Source: Trichosphaerium sp. ATCC 40318 | Taxonomy: Eukaryota; Protista; Tubulinea | DNA: 64,000 nt | Direction of reading: 5' to 3' | Assembly (NCBI GenBank): GCA_038496445.1 | Contig: JALMLS010000552.1 | Location: forward strand, 1 to 64,000 | Shown: positions 28,471-58,609 of the stretch, piece after piece | Position numbering within the stretch: the stretch's first letter is position 1 | Layout: every line of letters starts with the position of its first letter | Position numbers and translations under genes: made by a program | Notes under the pieces: model-generated | Told to the model about the DNA's origin: nothing | The model's database searches: none | The model's input: the letters and a program-made list of their open reading frames with translations, nothing else

Positions 28471-29600
28471 TCAACAAGCATTACCATTGACTTCAATTAC
28501 AGAAATAGCAATATTGTTATCACCTAAACTCCAAGCGCAACCAATAACAGGTATCTCTGTGCTTGCTGGCCAAGGATTGTAGAAGTCAATCTAAACCAAA
28601 AAAGTCAACGTGTTGAACAACAGAAAGTGACAAACGTACAAATTTAGTTCCAGTTTCTGTGGCAGAGGCGGAGGTTACTGCACCAGTAGAGGACCAGCAA
28701 TTGTTTGTAGTGGCGCCAGCTGGAGAAACTTGTCTCACTCTTATTGTCTGGATTGGAGCCCCACTTGATGGCGCTGTGAGGGAAACAATGACGTTCATAC
28801 CGCTACCCCAGTCTAAAGAAAAAAATCAGAAAAAGAACCAAAAAAAAAGAAAGCAAATACTTACTGTTGATGTCAACGTTTGAGATTGTTGGACAGAATG
28901 CGTTACCAGATGGTGTAGGAGTGCTACCGCCCATAGGTGGAGGTGTGCCCATTGTTGGCGGTGGTGGAGGTGGAAGTGTGCCGCCAGAAACAAATTGTGC
29001 GACTGCAGGTCCAGTGAAGAAGAAAGGTGCGTTTACGTCGTATACAAGTCTGTAACCGCTGGCATCCAAAGGAAGATGACCAGGAATAGTGACGACTGGG
29101 GTCCAAGCAACACCACCAGTGTTTCCTCCAGTGATCGTGACATCAGCACATTGAAGGTAGTGCTCAACATTGATGACTTGTTGAAGAGCGTACCACTCCC
29201 AACGAAGAACTGCGTTGCCATTTGGTACCCAAGGAGGAATGTAGAGATCCCATTCGCGGATGAGATGACAATCTCTGATCTCAGCAATCTTAGCCCAAGT
29301 TTGTTCGTTGTCGAAGGAGAGGTAGAAAAAGCAATCTCCTGGATGTGGCGCTTCGAAAAACCATTCTGTTTTGTATGTTTGTCCGGCTACGTAAGTCGCT
29401 GTTGGAGCTACGAAAGGAAGGTTCCTGCACACGTGACCTGAAACCCAGTCGCCGTTCTGAAGAAAAACTGGAGCGTGTTGTTGGTCGATACGTCTACCAG
29501 CTTGAACATCTCTTGTTGTTGGTACTGTGATACGTCCATGGCCTGATACAAGCGAGATAACTGCACAAAGGCAAAGTAAAGCGATGAATCTCCCGTACAT
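28471..29600 (-). CDS. Lytic polysaccharide monooxygenase + Pro linker + CBM2-like module
   Basis: His directly after the signal peptide (VSG|HGRITVP), HPGDCFFYLS, and LRWEWYAL...EHYLQCADVTI. The spliced C-terminal domain FCPT..DINNWGSGMNV...NAC has terminal Cys and the WGSG motif of CBM2. Confidence 0.85.
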
Positions 29601-30619
29601 ATTTTGTAACTTTAATACGAGAGCTGGGTTGATGCGTTGCTTGTTGTTAAAGGAGAAATATGTTTTAAAACAAGTGGAAATTTGCATAAAAAAAAACGGA
29701 AAAAACTTGTGTACTGCTTTGTCGGACAAATATCTTACCCGTATAAATACAAAGCGGTTGCGTATGTGAGTTACCTGCAAGTTACTGGTAGTGTTAAGGC
29801 TATTACGTGGTATGATGCAGTGAGAATAAAATGCAAGCACTGAGAACAGTTCGCAAAAAAGCAATGTTGTCCTCCGTATGTTGAGCTTGTTTACATCACT
29901 TGCCAGCGTGTATACTAGCGCATCTTTTTCTGGACACTAGCGCTAGCTCGTAATTCTGTATGTAGCTTAAACTCGCCTTCAAAGGTACTGGTAGCGTCGA
30001 TCGAGCGTATGAAAGCGAAATATAAAGAAAAATAAAGTATTCGGGCTATTTCCAACCGAAAAGTGCTGTTTGCAGGCCCATCGAGCCGAAAATAACTACC
30101 CGAACTATTAGGCATTACCCGATACACAGCACAGCGCAGTCACAAATAAAATTGCTTTTTTAGCTGAGCAGCAAATACACAATTGGCAAAGTGAACGAAA
30201 AAAACAAACATACTTACCATATCACGTGATGTACAATCATGCGTGATGTCACTACGAAAACATAAAAGTTGAAGATTGTGAGACAGTCCTAGGGCTGGGT
30301 CCTTTGTTTTCAATGCAAGCGGAGGTGTGCAGACAAAGAAAAAGAAACGTAGTCATTCACGTGAACATGGCCAAGTTTCTCCATTTTTTTTTTTATTTTA
30401 ACGTGGTACACTATTTTGCTTCGCTGTTTGTCCCTTTTCAAACGTTTGTTAAAGTTCAATCACGTTAAAAGTAGTGTATAACGCGAGTACATGACAGTAC
30501 GTACCGCGGTAGAGGTGTACATCAGTTACTGCAATTGACACGTCACCTCTGATTTACGTTCTGGTACAACACTTACCAGTGTACTCAGAAAGTACTGTAC
30601 ACCTAGCTAACCAAAAAAA

Positions 30620-51259: not shown

Positions 51260-53856
51260 ATGAAGCACCTTTTCGTGTTTGCGATAACGTTTGGCATAGC
51301 CTGTGCACTAGTAGGACTAAAAAAACATGAAAAAAACTATGTAGTCGTTCCTACTCACATTGCATTCTATAAAACAACAACAAACGTTGGTGCGTTAGTG
51401 TTAAATACGTTTAGACGAAGTTCTAACCAAGAATAGCTACAAATTCGCTTGGTGGTCCATTTGGAGGACACAGGGTACGAAACTACGCCAACACTGGTGT
51501 TTTACAGTAGTTTGTTGACATTTTTGTATTTAGACTAAGATTGCTATCGATCATGTATCTAGAATGCATCCTGGTACCTCTTGGGAAGTAACAAGCGACT
51601 ACATCACTCAACACAATAACGTGGAACATGTTTATCTACGACAGATGATAAACAGTATCCCTGTAAGTAATTGCACCAGTTTCCGGCGACAAAGCTGAAA
51701 TTCACAGAATGTTGTCAAGCTTTGGGTGTAAAATTCGTTTCTAATTTTTTTTGAAGGTCACAAATGCTGTGGCTAATGTGAATATACGTGATGGCCATGT
51801 TCTAAGCATGGGAGCTACGGTGTTTAGCGGAGAAGCACCAGAGCTTCAAGCAACTGAAGTATCACATAAAGAAGTACTTGTTTGTTGTTGCACAAAGTCT
51901 CGGATTAATGTATTCGTCAACAACAGGCTTTCTTTCATATATTAAATCACTTGGAACGTATCGACAAAATCCAAGAAAAAATACCAGACATGGAGCTCGG
52001 ATACGTTATGCTTGAAGATAAAACTCTTGCTCTTTCTCATCATGTATGTTCTTTGTTTAATTATTACACATCTGGGGCCTCACATAGTTCTGTAGACGGT
52101 AGTTGATCTCCAAAGTGTTGGTTTGTTCCATATATTTGTAGACGTAACTTCAGGACATATTCATGCTTGCTATAACTGGGTCAAATACGAGGCACGATTG
52201 AACTTTTGTTCTCTCAATAAATTCCCTGCTAATATCGTAAAATAGAAAGAAAACGCAGCCATTTACCAGATAACTAACGCTGAGTACTCTGTGTTTACAT
52301 ACCCAGATCATTTAAATCCAAACCACGGTGTAGAACGTGTTGAAGTGTATGCACTTTTTTCTTTCTTTTTTCTCAGACACTAAATAACAATGTGTGTAGA
52401 TCTGATCCATGGACGAAATTCGGTCCCTTTGCAAGTCCTGATGGATGGCACTATATTAAGGTATAGTTTAATCTACTATACTTTGTAAATCACCAACTAA
52501 ATTACTACGTATAGGGTGAGATTACTGACTACCACGTGACTGTTGGCAACAATGTTTATGCACAAGAAAACCACAACGGGTATAGAGATTGGAAACTAAA
52601 CTACAGACCGGATGGTGGCCAACAAAAACATCTTAAGTTCGAATTCCCACTTGATCTAACTAAAGAGCCTTTCTTCTACGAAGATGCTAGTATTGTAAAT
52701 ATGTTCTATTGGAATAATGTTCTACATGACTTGTTTTTTGTAAGTGGTTTTGATGAAGCCGCTGGAAACTTCCAAGCCAGCAATTTCAACGGTAAAGGGT
52801 TAGGCAATGATGCTGTTATTGCTAAGTCTATTGACTCAACTTGTAAGAACAACGCTTACTTTTCTACTCCTCCTGATGGTACGTTCTTTCGAATCCAATT
52901 CTAAGAAAAATATGAGAATTAACTGCTATTTGTTGATAGGTCAGAGTGGTAAAATGGTTTTGTGTAAATGGGACAAAACAGAACCCCAGCGTGATGCTGC
53001 TCTTGATTCTCAAATCATGATTCACGAATACGGTCATGGTGTCTCAAATCGGTACGGTTTTTTTCCGTTGTCTGCAGTTATTTTCAATTGATATCATCTA
53101 GTCTCACTGGAGGTCCACAAGATGTGAACTGTTTAAACGCAGACTTACCATCCGGTATGGGAGAAGGTTGGAGTGATTGGTGGGCTATAATGCTAGCAAC
53201 AACAGTTGATGATGCTGCAGACACTGCGTTTGTTATTGGAGCTTATGGTAAGCGTTTACCCTTTTTATAGTTTGCTAACTAGCGTAGTTAATAATAATAA
53301 AACTGGTCTCCGTCCGTTCCCTTATGCTTACAATCTTACTGTAAATCCACAAAGCTACGTGATGACTTCATTGCCAGAATACCAAGAACCACACGCCAGA
53401 GGAAGTATTTGGGCCACAATTCTCTTCAGTGTTTACTGGGAGATGCGTATGGAGTACGGCTATGATCCTGACTGGGTGAATGGTACTGCTGGAAACAACA
53501 TGATATGGCAAAATGTCGTAGATGGTCTCAAGCACGTCCTTAAAACATTATTCTAACGAACTAAGACATACATAGAATGCAACCTTGCTCTCCGAATTTC
53601 GTTCAAGCCAGAGATGCTATAATCCATGCTGATGAAGTAAACCACAGTTTTGAACATGTTTGCACAATGTGGAAGGTATGAATATCATTTTTTATTTTAT
53701 CACGTGATGGTAGTCAACACCAGCTTGTGGTGTAATAAACCAGTGCTTATTCTTTGATAGGGTTTTGCAAGAAGAGGTTTAGGCGTAAAAGCATTCGCTA
53801 CTTCAGACCCTGTTAGAGAAGATTACAGCATCCCTGACAGATGTGGTCCTTTCTAG
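51260..53856 (+). CDS. M36 (fungalysin) metallopeptidase with FTP propeptide, many introns
   Basis: Signal peptide, VEHVYLRQ..|[42 protein letters not shown]|[21 protein letters not shown] and [14 protein letters not shown]. Confidence 0.95.
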
Positions 53857-54112
53857 TACAACAATAAATACCACATACAACATGCAGTAATTATGTTTGA
53901 CGTTCAGTTATCCTTTTGAGAAAAATATGAGATTTGTACCAGCTTGCAGTTAGTTCCTACAAGCATTAAACTACTCTTTGGAAGTGCCATGGATAGTTGA
54001 GTGGTTTTAGTGACAATACAGTCACTCCAGCACGTGGTCACAACTGGTAAACAAATTGGCTACAGTCAAAATGATACAAATGTATACTAATGTTACACGT
54101 GGCACCTTCTAG

Positions 54113-57100
54113 CGGCTATGATGCACCTCCAGTTGTTCGTTTGGACCCTATTGCGCGTATCTTGTTAATGGGCGTTTATGACGATAATAATCCTCTATCA
54201 GTATTAAGCTCGTTATCCGTAACAAAAAAAAAAATTACCTGTAACAAGATGTAATAAAAACCACTGTTGACCACCACAACTTTAATACTACTACAGTTGT
54301 TACCTATTCTGATAGCGCAAAAGTCCAATCACGCTGAATAAAACGTAAAACATTAGCAAGCTATGAAATCGCGTAAAAGACGTGCCTATACACTTCATTT
54401 TCAACGTGATAATGTTGGCAGGGCTAAAGAGAAGGCACAGGCAAAAAAACGTAAAATATCTGACACTCGAGCGCAAAACAGACTAAAAGCGCAAAAAAAA
54501 AAACAAATAAGAACAACAGAGCAGAGTACAAACCTAAACAAAGTAATTGACGATGGTTGGCAAGTGTTACCGGACGAGATAATTTCCTTCCCTGAAATCA
54601 AGCATGTCTCTGAACCCTCTGGTAAAACTGGACGTTTTATATCCAACACAGCTAAGTTGTTTGAGCGGTTGATACCTAGACACATTTGGGAGTTTATTTT
54701 TGAGGCGACAGAACAAACACGTCAAGACCACGAAGATGAGTTCCCAGAATCAAACAGGACTTGGCATACTCCGTTTACCTTGCAAGAGATAATTCAAATG
54801 TTTGGTACATTACTTTTGTGGGAACAACGTTCCGGTGAGAGTAGTTACACGAATTTTTTGAACCAATTGAATGAATGGAAAAAAAAGGCACATTGGTGTA
54901 AAAAAAAACCAATTCCAGAAAGGCGATTTGGTGTTTTAAGGAAATGTCTTACTGCTGATGTGTATGAACTGTGTCGTAAGGTGTCAAAATGCTTAAAAAT
55001 GGCTTGGAAATCAGGGTACATAATTGTAATAGACGAAACAATGTTAGAATGGAAAGGAAAAGGAGACAGTATAATGTGTATCAAAGGCAAACCCCATCCA
55101 CTAGGCCTTATGATCTACCTAATGGCGGTTTATTCTGACAAACATCAACACAAGCCATACATTTTGGGAATATACCCACATTGGATGCCTCATGCAAAGC
55201 CACTGGATGCAACTAAACACTTGTTGGATTCCTTTTCATCACATTATAATTTCAAACCACATGTTGTGTTAGATTCAAGATTTATGGACAGGAGTTTTAT
55301 GGGTTGGATGCGGCACTACATTGGAAGTGATGAAGGAGGAGCTACTGTTGCAATATCTGCTAACCAGCAGAAAAAACTATTTACCACTCTTGCTTGTGAC
55401 GTTCCAGTTAACAAATGGAGAATTGCAAAGAACAACAAGACAGGTGAAGTCGCTTCTTACAAACATGTTCACAATGATAGTGGGGATCCTGTACATTGGC
55501 GACTATTAACATTAGGTTGGAGTGTTGGTAGCCACGCCATGTTGAATAGCATGCCTGCCTTTTCAAAGCTCGCAGAGTTTGAACTTTTGTGCAAAAATTT
55601 TACTGTAGACTCATTAATAGGCTTTGTTAGAAACAGCAACAAAGTAGCAACAGGCGGCAAAGAAGAGTTAGCTATGGCAGCTTTAAACTTAACTGCACTT
55701 GACGTGGCATCACTAAGAGAGGTGCGAGATATTAGAACTGCAGAACAACAAGCCAGGGAAGAGCAAAAAAACAAACAACAACGAAAAACCAACATTCATT
55801 GTGTGAAAAAGTGTTTATACGGAGGCAAAGATGACAAAAAAAAAGCAATGATGTTGTGCAATTGTTGCAGCACATGGTTCCATGGAAAATGCTTAGGATT
55901 GAGTGATAAACAACTTGCTCAATCAAACCCAAAAGAACGTTTTTACTGTAAAAGTTGTGAAAACAAACTGGTTCAAGTCCGCACTAAATCAAAAACCTGG
56001 ACCCGAGAAGAGTTAGAAAAAATGGACAAAACTGAATTACTAATCCAATGCCAAGTGTTGGGCGAAAAACGAGCTGGTAACAAACCAGCATTAATTGCTA
56101 AAATCTTAAAAGCAAGTGATCCAACATTTGAAAATAATTTTGCTATTCAAAATAAGCAATTTTTGGGGCCTCCTCGCTCTGGTCCTGCCGTGATGCATGA
56201 TTTTTATAAGTCTCACTTTGATGTTGTTGATCGTGCTAATCAAACTAAGTGGAGTACCTCAATACCTGGTCGAGCAACAGAACAATCTTATCGAATGATT
56301 ATTGGAATAATGAAAACAACCATTACATCTCTTGGTGCCATCATGGATTATAATTTGGAAGATAAATGCCCTAATCACAATCAAATACATCTTACACTTG
56401 CAAAGGCCATGTACAATGGCAACATTTATAAGTAATGTATAACAATAAATAAAAAAAAATTTCTTTGAGACTACATTTCTAATTCTTTATTCATAATGTA
56501 GCGCTAGTGAAATTATGATAGTAGCTACCTAGCTAGCAGCTGATGTAACAGAAAGTGTTTCAAATAACAACAAAGTAACGTTCTGAATTTTTTTTTTGTA
56601 TACACAAAAAACAACCCAAAAAAAGTAATCACAAACAGCAAAAGTCATAAAACAATGTTGTGTATATAAACACAGCTGTATTATATAGGATCAAATAATC
56701 AAGAAACCACATGCACAATTGTAGCATATAAATTGCGTTTTGAAAACATACAAAAAGTCCAAAAATCCATTTTGTGGAAGTGTTTGTAGCAACTTCAGAT
56801 GAACAATTCAAGCATAGTGCTCATATATGACCCATAACACGGCAATTTGAATCAAAATTATCCAAAATTGAATGAAAGAGTCTGTGTAGCAAACACGACA
56901 AATTTGAAAAAAACAGTTTTTAATTTTCAACAAACTTTATGACACTTGCCAACTCCATCACCAACATTTAGTGCTTCAATTAGTCGGTATGATATTACAA
57001 TGGTCTTCATTTACATTATAAGCAAACAACCGCAAATGCTGAGTCAAATGATGGAACATTATTGCTATATTGTAAACTCATGTATAAAAAACGGGAAAAA

Positions 57101-58281
57101 TTGGAATCAGTAGCTTTGGACTAACAACTTGTTACGAAATACTATTATCATGAAGACATATGTTTTGCACTTACAGTCATGATTAGAAATGATGATGCGC
57201 ACAGCAAAGAAATTCGAAATAAGGGTGCTGAGGCATAAGAGTAGAAAAAATTTGTTACAGCGTATCTTGTTAATGGGCGTTTATGACGATAATAATCCTC
57301 TATCAGTATTAAGGGGTACGACACATACGCGCAATTAGTAAAATAACGCGGTTTAAACCGTTTTTTTCAAAAACAACTCGAAACACGTTTATTTCATGTT
57401 AAAAGCGAGTAATAGGTGTTGGATACACTGTAATAAAGCTTATTTGGGAATACGTACTGGAATACAACAAGGAGCACTACGACCCGTTCATTATAGTCCC
57501 ACCACGAAGTAAATATCGCTTTGGTGCATATTTCGCCACCATCGACAAGATATTATGTGAATCACACGAGGGCGATTCATGGGATGACGAACCGGCTGGT
57601 TTTGGAAAGGTAATTTATAGCAAGTTTCCGTCACCTTCAGGAAAAGATATTGATATCAACATGATGCCTCTAATGATGAACAAAAAACTCTTTAAAGATC
57701 AACTCCCAGAAGAGTTGTGGCCTTTCATATACTTACTGGATATTGCTCTTACTGTAGATAGATACCAGGAAGGTACAATATGCTTCTTAACAATACAAGA
57801 GTCTTTTGTTGAAAAAGGTAAAACGCAACGAAGACCAGGTGTTCACGTTGAGTTTCCTGGTACGCTAAAAACATCACATGGATATTACGATGACGCTTGG
57901 GGTGGAGGATATGGTTTAAGCGATGGTATGTTTATTGCTACAAACTTGGATGACACGTGCGCTGTCTGGGATGTAAGCATTGAGGATAAAAAAGACGGAA
58001 CATCAGTTATTGGTTCTTTGGGTGATTTGGAACATTTGAAGAATGTCTTGCCTAGAGAAACAATGTCGTTGCTTAAAGGTAGGGCAATGTATTGGCTAAC
58101 AGATAGAACACCACATGAGGCATTACCAATGAAAGAATCAGGAAGAAGGATATTCTTTAGGTTAGTTTCGAATAAGCTTGGTATGTGGTATGAATCTCAT
58201 TCTACAAAGAATCCGATTGGTATTGTTCCTGATCCCAAAAAAACAAGGATAATCAAAGAGAACAAGTTTTTAGATGCGTAA
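54113..58281 (+). CDS. Conserved hypothetical protein (2OG-Fe(II)-oxygenase-like fold suspected), interrupted by the transposon
   Basis: Removing the element and one repeat joins GYDAPPVVRLDPIARILLMGVYDDNNPLSVLR to GTTH|..VLDTVIKLIWEYV... The core has INMMP, LTIQESFV..G.TQRRPGVHVE, WLTDRTPHEALP and FFRLVS. True start lies upstream of 54113 and is unresolved. Confidence 0.7.
54155..54208 (+). repeat. Left copy of exact 54-bp direct repeat
   Basis: gcgtatcttgttaatgggcgtttatgacgataataatcctctatcagtattaag, identical to 57260-57313. Confidence 0.97.
54208..57259 (+). mobile_element. piggyBac-superfamily DNA transposon, ~3.05 kb
   Basis: Begins right after TTAA (54204-54207). Left end gctcgttatccGTAACAAA..ctGTAACAA is inverted relative to right end TTTGTTACag. 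Holds one transposase ORF and interrupts a host gene. Confidence 0.85.
54363..56435 (+). CDS. piggyBac-like DDD transposase with inserted SAP-PHD-SAP module
   Basis: IVIDETMLEWKG, KGKPHPLGL, VVLDSRF and FYKSHFDVVDRAN are the piggyBac catalytic blocks. A C4HC3 PHD (~55797-55958) and a SAP (LEKMDKTELLIQCQVLGEKRAGNKPALIAKI) lie before the last Asp. Intact, intronless, 690 aa. Confidence 0.9.
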   Translation: MKSRKRRAYTLHFQRDNVGRAKEKAQAKKRKISDTRAQNRLKAQKKKQIRTTEQSTNLNKVIDDGWQVLPDEIISFPEIKHVSEPSGKTGRFISNTAKLFERLIPRHIWEFIFEATEQTRQDHEDEFPESNRTWHTPFTLQEIIQMFGTLLLWEQRSGESSYTNFLNQLNEWKKKAHWCKKKPIPERRFGVLRKCLTADVYELCRKVSKCLKMAWKSGYIIVIDETMLEWKGKGDSIMCIKGKPHPLGLMIYLMAVYSDKHQHKPYILGIYPHWMPHAKPLDATKHLLDSFSSHYNFKPHVVLDSRFMDRSFMGWMRHYIGSDEGGATVAISANQQKKLFTTLACDVPVNKWRIAKNNKTGEVASYKHVHNDSGDPVHWRLLTLGWSVGSHAMLNSMPAFSKLAEFELLCKNFTVDSLIGFVRNSNKVATGGKEELAMAALNLTALDVASLREVRDIRTAEQQAREEQKNKQQRKTNIHCVKKCLYGGKDDKKKAMMLCNCCSTWFHGKCLGLSDKQLAQSNPKERFYCKSCENKLVQVRTKSKTWTREELEKMDKTELLIQCQVLGEKRAGNKPALIAKILKASDPTFENNFAIQNKQFLGPPRSGPAVMHDFYKSHFDVVDRANQTKWSTSIPGRATEQSYRMIIGIMKTTITSLGAIMDYNLEDKCPNHNQIHLTLAKAMYNGNIYK
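57260..57313 (+). repeat. Right copy of exact 54-bp direct repeat
   Basis: Identical to 54155-54208; followed by the continuation of the host reading frame. Confidence 0.97.
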
Positions 58282-58609
58282 ACTAGAATAGAATACAAGA
58301 TTACATTACAGAGCACCTTCCCTGCCTTGCTTCGAAAAAAAACCAAAGGGGTACTCGTGAAGTGACAAACCTTTTTCATCTTTCAAAAAAGCAATAAACC
58401 AATGTCTTTCAGAAAAAAAGAGACGGCCATGTTGGCTCGCACGTGTCACAAGTTGTCTGGTTCACAGAGCGCGCACCTACTCACATTTATTGTAACCTTA
58501 AAACCAGATATCTTGAAACCTAACAGAAGTAAGTGTTAAGCAAAAAGCTTCAAAATCGTTGGTTCTAAGTTTACATGACTTATTTGAAAGCTTATTCTAA
58601 CCCATCAGC

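Follow-up and report, generated by a model that had tools for sequence, protein, structure and literature searches.

The window analysed in this work, the first 64,000 nucleotides (nt) of contig JALMLS010000552.1 of Trichosphaerium sp. ATCC 40318, hosts an open reading frame (ORF) encoding a piggyBac-type transposase of 690 amino acids (aa). A PHD finger and a SAP domain, the latter recognized by profile and homology, are nested in the protein between the second and the third catalytic aspartates, and the cysteine-rich domain (CRD) at the C-terminus is missing. A single-chain enzyme of this kind had been proposed in an earlier note made from the letters of the sequence, and the structural side of the proposal is right. 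In the searched literature no description was found of a mobile piggyBac-type enzyme having a canonical reader-type PHD and a SAP domain nested in its catalytic region. The explanation which we favour, with a probability of about 0.78, is that the ORF is part of an autonomous DNA transposon, present here as a recent insertion, and representative of a distinct, CRD-less piggyBac lineage, in which the SAP domain would ensure DNA binding, and the PHD finger would provide an accessory contact with chromatin.

Homologs, comparison of the family profile to solved structures, and fold are three independent routes, and since they agree the ORF product is a piggyBac-type transposase with three catalytic aspartates (DDD). 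The Pfam DDE_Tnp_1_7 domain is recognized in the ORF only between aa 203 and 286 (26 bits, gathering score 22.4), and distant full-length relatives reach about 1e-12 against the same profile, over about 250 profile positions. The profile of the family matches T. ni piggyBac (6x67) with an E-value of 2.6e-15, and Myotis piggyBat with an E-value of 5e-9. The blocks VVLDSRF and VVDRAN, pointed out in the earlier note as housing the second and the third aspartate, are present and carry D304 and D623; IVIDET provides the first one, D224. An AlphaFold2 model, obtained from 88 sequences, has a mean predicted local distance difference test score (pLDDT) of 87.9 and a predicted template modelling score of 0.77. 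The model superposes on 6x67 with a Z score of 30.7 and a root mean square deviation of 3.2 Å over 363 residues (VIA-align; residues 81-688 of the model on residues 117-515 of piggyBac), and on piggyBat with a Z score of 29.4; Tn5 transposases come next, at about 17. The superposition spans the split, all-helical domain for DNA binding and dimerization (DDBD), the catalytic core and the insertion domain of piggyBac. In piggyBac the insertion domain is three-stranded, and comprises residues 372-433, between D346 and D447 (PMC7351741). The three strands of the model match its topology. Fold prediction and HMMER searches, suggested in the earlier note as checks on the ORF, hence gave a piggyBac fold, and scores above the Pfam cut-offs for both DDE_Tnp_1_7 and PHD.

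No cysteine cluster is present at the C-terminus of the protein, which stops 67 aa after D623. All the full-length relatives stop at the same place, about 70 aa past the third aspartate, and the absence of a terminal cysteine-rich domain, noticed earlier in the translated sequence, holds for them as well. In keeping with this, residue 515 is the last one of piggyBac to be structurally aligned, and the CRD, residues 553-594, lies beyond it (PMC7351741). At the opposite end, aa 1-63 (54363-54551) are very basic (net charge +16, isoelectric point (pI) 11.5), include KRRK-type clusters, and are predicted to fold into a long helix, which is likely a nuclear localisation signal; in contrast, the N-terminus of piggyBac is disordered.

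In the model a stretch of about 210 residues (aa 396-606), following the insertion domain, lies outside the piggyBac fold, which the chain rejoins at the helix bearing D623. The inserted module, located between the insertion domain and the helix of the third aspartate, includes in order a SAP-like helix pair, a long helix, the PHD finger and the SAP domain. Helices are predicted at 399-412, 415-424 and 433-441, the long helix at 445-472; next come a unit resembling a zinc finger, in which two short strands are predicted (480-535), and a helix-extended-helix unit (548-585). Modelled separately, the module has a pLDDT of 84.

The PHD finger is the best defined part of the module. Pfam PF00628 is matched at aa 484-532 with an E-value of 5e-7 (30 bits, cut-off 24), and the zinc ligands are all in place (C480, C484, C499, C502, H507, C510, C529 and C532). 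Searches of the Protein Data Bank (PDB) with the module model retrieved PHD fingers only, superposed at 2.0-3.0 Å over about 50 residues with probabilities of 0.96-1.0, and with E-values which are weak owing to the small size of the domain. Ligands, profile and fold all bear out the complete PHD reported in the earlier note. By sequence, the best solved matches are CFP1 (2e-6) and PHF2 (6e-6), followed by DIDO1, BPTF, PHF8, MLL1-PHD3 and TAF3 (phmmer against the PDB). Most of the PDB fold matches have been solved with peptides of histone H3 di- or trimethylated at lysine 4 (H3K4me2, H3K4me3). When sequence and fold are considered together, Spp1 and ING1 join the above seven proteins, and the nearest solved PHD fingers are almost all readers of these marks. 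The Pfam domain zf-Tnp_2 was not reported for the ORF, and searches of the ESM Atlas with the module returned ordinary PHD proteins only.

The two segments flanking the finger are of different quality. The segment at aa 543-590, described earlier as a clear SAP, scores 13.3 bits if taken alone, below the Pfam SAP cut-off (23.9), and a SAP domain was not reported by the Pfam scan of the whole 690-aa protein. The homologous segments of three relatives, P0001, P0034 and P0054, exceed the cut-off, and a profile built from eleven family members matches solved SAP domains, among which Ku70 (1e-6), a plant SIZ1-type protein, Tho1, Hcc-1, DEK and MKL1. On these grounds of profile and homology only, the segment is taken as a true SAP domain. 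The segment at aa 400-447, regarded in the earlier note as a degenerate SAP, has no match in Pfam and is only moderately similar to the family SAP profile (hhalign probability 75%), although a helix-loop-helix is predicted for it. It can be called SAP-like, and no more.

Relatives of the protein, designated here by P numbers, and by L numbers as to their loci, were obtained by running phmmer exhaustively against 1.84 billion representatives, which yielded 144 sequences; a word-seeded protein search with the whole ORF gave no match, and one scan of metagenomes found no relative. Public assemblies, queried for the exact ORF, had no record of it. All of the 144 reside on short environmental contigs (JGI, ENA, Logan), and none has a functional name. 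Alignment and domain census revealed that a SAP domain immediately preceding the third aspartate is common to essentially all the members covering that region. PHD fingers are much rarer. The Trichosphaerium protein clusters with P0001, P0145/P0002, P0005 and P0009 in a close clade (support 100/99), and a full PHD is found only in the protein itself, in P0005/P0147 and in the fragment P0102. P0001, P0145/P0002 and P0009 carry at the same position (alignment columns 560-680) four cysteines (CxxC...CxxC), which may represent either a reduced PHD or a PHD precursor; the inner branching of the clade in the tree does not order gain and loss. P0005 is the C-terminal half of a gene found at L002-L006, the N-terminal half of which lies upstream, across a short GT...AG intron. 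Because this gene is complete across the intron, the association of DDD core, PHD and SAP, at 31-34% identity, extends to at least two other organisms.

A feature search of the ESM Atlas (score 0.83, to be taken as a lead and not as an alignment) pointed to unnamed clusters of green algal and diatom proteins, in which DDE_Tnp_1_7 is combined with SAP. Having a piggyBac-type core and a SAP domain, these proteins probably belong to the same broad CRD-less lineage, but no PHD is recorded for them. No description of piggyBac enzymes carrying a SAP domain, or a PHD inside the core, was found in the searched literature. The largest piggyBac mining study demanded both a CRD and a TTAA duplication, and CRD-less enzymes would have been excluded by such criteria (PMC13461360). 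As far as found, the lineage is undescribed, and is known, besides the protein reported here, only from metagenome contigs.

The coordinates of the element, of its protein domains and of the gene which hosts it are given in Table 1. The CTCGTTA terminus at the left end is common to the terminal inverted repeats (TIRs) of L007-L009, and is found at L001 as well, 135 nt upstream of the start codon. The motif GTAACAA occurs at 54219 and 54241, and direct sub-repeats span 54213-54225 and 54235-54247. The first 40 nt of the element are laid out as the TIR of L010, in which the terminus is followed by a short motif, by an A-run with TTAC, and by the motif once more. The situation at the right end is another. 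Its reverse complement has only 8 nt in common with the left end, which is not above the level of shuffled sequences, and no minus-strand CTCGTTA, the expected terminal TAACGAG, is found near the right end. The possibility that the true right TIR lies farther downstream was considered, and none was found up to position 58400. This copy has lost its right TIR, and given this loss, and the presence of a 54-bp duplication at its borders, it probably cannot move again.

Table 1. Features of the element and of the interrupted host gene (window coordinates)
Feature	Position	Strand	Evidence
Interrupted host gene: ATG at 54090, exon 1, intron of 94-100 nt (GT at 57316), exon 2 to 58281	54090..58281	+	reconstruction, homologs
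54-bp host duplication, left copy; part of host exon 1, encoding RILLMGVYDDNNPLSVL	54155..54208	+	100% identical to 57260-57313
Inserted element, 3051 bp	54209..57259	+	lies between exact 54-bp repeats; removal of 54209-57313 restores the host gene
Left TIR: CTCGTTA terminus, then GTAACAA twice, parted by A-run and TTAC	54209..54248	+	terminus and layout as in relatives
Transposase ORF, 690 aa, intact, one open frame	54363..56435	+	ORF call; AlphaFold2 model; 144 phmmer relatives
Catalytic D224, first Asp (IVIDET)	55032..55034	+	conserved in family; aligned by family profile to D268 of piggyBac (6x67)
Catalytic D304, second Asp (VVLDSRF)	55272..55274	+	invariant column in family alignment
Beta-stranded insertion domain, aa 326-385	55338..55517	+	model strands by DSSP: 351-357, 363-370, 376-384
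SAP-like helix-loop-helix 1, aa 400-447	55560..55703	+	model helices; hhalign probability 75%
PHD finger, C4HC3, aa 480-532	55800..55958	+	Pfam, PDB phmmer, fold, eight ligands
SAP domain (by profile and homology), aa 543-590	55989..56132	+	family profile against PDB; homologous segment of P0001
Catalytic D623, third Asp (VVDRAN)	56229..56231	+	nearly invariant in family; aligned by family profile to D447 of piggyBac (6x67; GGVDTLDQ)
Right-end remnant: one inverted sub-terminal motif, TTTGTTACA; terminal TAACGAG missing	57251..57259	+	end comparison
Right copy of the 54-bp host duplication	57260..57313	+	exact repeat; host reconstruction

The relatives provide a picture of intact members of the family. 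One relative of the four-cysteine type resides at three different sites (L007-L009), where it is flanked by near-perfect TIRs of 37-43 nt beginning with CTCGTTAAG. The PHD-bearing relative found at L010/L011, encoding P0102, has two different left flanks and TIRs of 45 nt. As judged by ends and locations, these relatives are mobile elements. At L007 (439-2802), L008 (97-2460) and L009 (100-2463) the flanks read, on both sides and towards the element, CCT followed by 3-5 A/T bases; they look inverted rather than directly repeated, and perfectly so in L009 (CCTAAT/.../ATTAGG, slashes marking the element borders). This may reflect either a preference for palindromic targets or variability of the outermost bases of the TIRs.

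The element interrupts a conserved host gene. Excision of the interval 54209-57313 joins the ATG at 54090 to a GT...AG intron, and to a frame which is open down to 58281, for a protein of 328-330 aa. The downstream part of this protein has 85 homologs in diverse eukaryotes, and the exon-1 peptide RLDPIARILLMGVYDDNNPLSVLRG matches the conserved motif found at the N-terminus of the homologs, with an E-value of 6e-18 to one of them, P0151. The 54-bp repeat is thus host coding DNA, and encodes this N-terminal motif. The host family, widespread in eukaryotes, includes a Hydra 'uncharacterized protein', has no Pfam domain, and features at the N-terminus the motif RLxPIARxLLxGVYDD. The earlier note placed the copy within the 5' coding part of a host gene, and this agrees with both the reconstructed exon 1 and the N-termini of the homologs, the insertion point being located about 119 nt past the start codon. 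The upstream neighbour gene ends only about 230 bp before the host ATG, and the insertion point falls in the zone in which a transcribed gene would have its first nucleosomes. The identity of the two 54-bp copies shows the insertion to be recent.

Judging from its borders, a 54-bp duplication and a truncated right TIR, the insertion is atypical, and does not correspond to a normal piggyBac-type footprint. The duplicated segment ends in TTAAG. The assumption that the TTAA tetramers at 54204-54207 and 57270-57273 are a canonical duplication was rejected, since the last 11 nt of the element would have to coincide with the host sequence. Two scenarios would fit the data. The element may have been inserted beside TTAAG in the ordinary way, and a break at its right end may have been subsequently repaired by copying the host flank; alternatively, the insertion may have been aberrant, with widely spaced joins. 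Within the 64-kb window no further copies of the protein, of the element or of the terminal motif were found.

Additional features of the region deserve mention. Three ATG codons in the right part of the element (from 57189) share the reading frame of the right repeat and of the splice donor of host exon 1 (57189-57315). If transcription starts inside the element, a chimeric protein, made of 24 element-derived residues followed by RILLMGVYDD..., could be formed. The upstream neighbour (52536-53860), transcribed in the same direction and containing short introns, encodes a fungalysin-type metallopeptidase of the M36 family, as indicated by Pfam matches to two exons (E-values 1e-33 and 9e-19). 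Farther away, an ORF on the minus strand (28803-29864) matches AA9, the lytic polysaccharide monooxygenase family formerly called GH61 (E-value 1.5e-10). AA9 proteins are best known from fungi, and the match would be unusual if the genome is that of an amoeba.

The organization of the protein suggests how the element may work. The insertion domain of piggyBac lines the target-DNA channel and is in contact with target DNA, and mutations in this domain uncouple excision from integration; the CRD recognizes and binds repeats which are sub-terminal in the transposon ends (PMC7351741, PMC5861402). In the transposon described here the SAP domain, perhaps along with the SAP-like unit, may have taken over DNA binding from the lost CRD, and may contact either the element's sub-terminal repeats or, at the target, A/T-rich DNA. 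The PHD finger would act at the target as an accessory module contacting chromatin. Most likely it would bind the tail of histone H3, and, close to the target-DNA channel, either tether the transpososome to nucleosomal targets or activate it on them; in the AlphaFold2 model the module emerges beside the insertion domain. The finger is regarded as accessory because relatives of the four-cysteine type, which have perfect TIRs and occupy several insertion sites, lack a full PHD. Judging from these relatives, a full PHD is dispensable for mobility. A point against the favoured scenario is the lack, in four relatives (L007-L010), of a clean duplication, either of TTAA or of 5 bp. Their junctions are A/T-rich, and examples such as TTTAA/CTCG, TAAT/CTCG and CGAG/ATTAGG are not clean direct repeats.

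What the PHD finger recognizes can be envisaged in more than one way. It could be a specific reader of H3K4me3, which steers integration to the first nucleosomes of active genes or, as the PHD of RAG2, switches it on there, and copies of the element should in this case accumulate shortly downstream of transcription starts. Targeting of this sort is plausible, given the relatedness of the finger to K4me2/3 readers and the conservation of three of the four positions of the aromatic cage, yet as a specific function it is held to be doubtful. The methionine ahead of the third cysteine and the tryptophan two residues before the histidine, seen already in the earlier note, fall at cage positions: with PHF2 as the reference of the HMMER alignment, the two most diagnostic ones are taken by M496 and W505, and Y486 is aligned with the second cage tyrosine. 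The methyl-lysine cage comprises an aromatic residue before the first cysteine, another one after the second, methionine or tyrosine three residues ahead of the third, and tryptophan two residues before the histidine. Methionine and tryptophan are kept in P0005 and P0102, notwithstanding an identity of only 31-34%. The closeness of the insertion to the host ATG, the small size of the upstream intergenic gap and the position of the module by the target-binding insertion domain (PMC7351741) all go in the same direction. Several observations weigh against it. The first cage aromatic residue is replaced by His479, the usual aspartate after the third cysteine is replaced by asparagine, and the inference on targeting rests on one insertion, which is moreover atypical. 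In addition, the finger is strongly basic (net charge +7, pI 9.1), and is suited to bind DNA, or the acidic patch of nucleosomes, as well as to read histone tails, whereas the fingers of P0005 and P0102 are acidic (net charge -4 and -5, respectively). Typical PHD readers are not strongly basic. The whole scenario, in which the finger, placed beside the target-DNA channel, recognizes H3K4-methylated nucleosomes and directs integration to sites shortly downstream of where active genes start, as an independently evolved, cis-encoded equivalent of the RAG2 PHD acting with RAG1, is somewhat unlikely, and is proposed as a tentative one.

The charge of the finger would be accounted for if PHD and SAP together were a relocated substitute for the CRD, engaged in binding the sub-terminal repeats of the element or in dimerization, and not in chromatin reading. 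The piggyBac CRD is itself a PHD-like, cross-brace finger, positively charged and able to bind DNA (PMC5861402, PMC8086355), and a lineage devoid of CRD, yet featuring long TIRs with paired sub-terminal motifs, needs a protein domain to bind them. We consider this substitution improbable: the mobility of the four-cysteine relatives implies that end binding can do without a full PHD, the fingers of P0005 and P0102 are acidic, the signature of the finger (M, W-x-H, G-x-C-x-G) is the one of histone readers and differs from that of the piggyBac CRD, and a zf-Tnp_2 match was not reported. Domestication of the ORF into a piggyBac-derived gene serving the host, as the PGBD genes or PiggyMac, would be compatible with the intact frame, the retention of the catalytic triad, the loss of the CRD, the gain of chromatin-type domains, known in some domesticated transposases, and the lack of the right TIR. 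The interruption of a conserved host gene, flanked by fully identical duplications which denote a recent event, and a left end corresponding to the TIR of mobile relatives, make this hypothesis very improbable, and support the notion that the ORF belongs to a recently inserted transposon.

Compared to known systems, the element combines familiar traits in an unfamiliar manner. T. ni piggyBac and Myotis piggyBat (6x67, 9c0f) have the overall fold of the Trichosphaerium protein, with a DDBD, an RNase H-like DDD core and a beta-stranded insertion domain, and are cut-and-paste transposases acting on TIRs. Both have however a C-terminal CRD, in place of which the protein described here has a module of about 210 aa, including SAP-like, PHD and SAP segments, ahead of the third aspartate. 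Termini are also different (CTCGTTA... versus CCC...), no clean TTAA duplication is seen, and sequence identity is only about 14%. Chromatin reading has a precedent within the piggyBac superfamily in the domesticated ciliate nucleases PiggyMac and Tpb2p, in which a zinc finger contacts the tail of histone H3 (PMC8086355, PMC3861120). In those proteins, which are products of host genes and deal with heterochromatin marks, the reader is the C-terminal CRD, which in PiggyMac is not a canonical PHD; here, a canonical reader-type PHD resides inside the catalytic region of the enzyme of a mobile element.

Outside the superfamily, RAG1/RAG2 and RAG-like transposons associate a DDE recombinase of the transposase type with a PHD binding H3K4me3 (PMC5175335, PMC7204232). 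The resemblance is functional only: in RAG the PHD is carried by RAG2, a subunit distinct from the catalytic one, and the latter, being related to Transib, is not homologous to the protein described here. Readers encoded by the element itself, and thought to bias the landing site, are also found in the PHD-carrying ORF1 of Jockey-type long interspersed nuclear elements (PMC4120745). These elements are of another class and use another enzyme, and the reader is terminal, not nested in a catalytic domain. Chromodomains found in the integrases of chromoviruses are likewise element-encoded, terminal reader domains thought to bias the landing site.

Among the main tools for gene delivery is piggyBac, the targeting of which is usually changed through artificial fusions. 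The lineage described here shows that the CRD has been lost in nature, and that an insert of 210 aa, including two or three folded domains, is tolerated beside the active site. The position of the insert marks a permissive site for engineering. Should the PHD finger prove to read H3K4 methylation, the element would be a self-contained, chromatin-guided DNA transposase, and an independent parallel to RAG.

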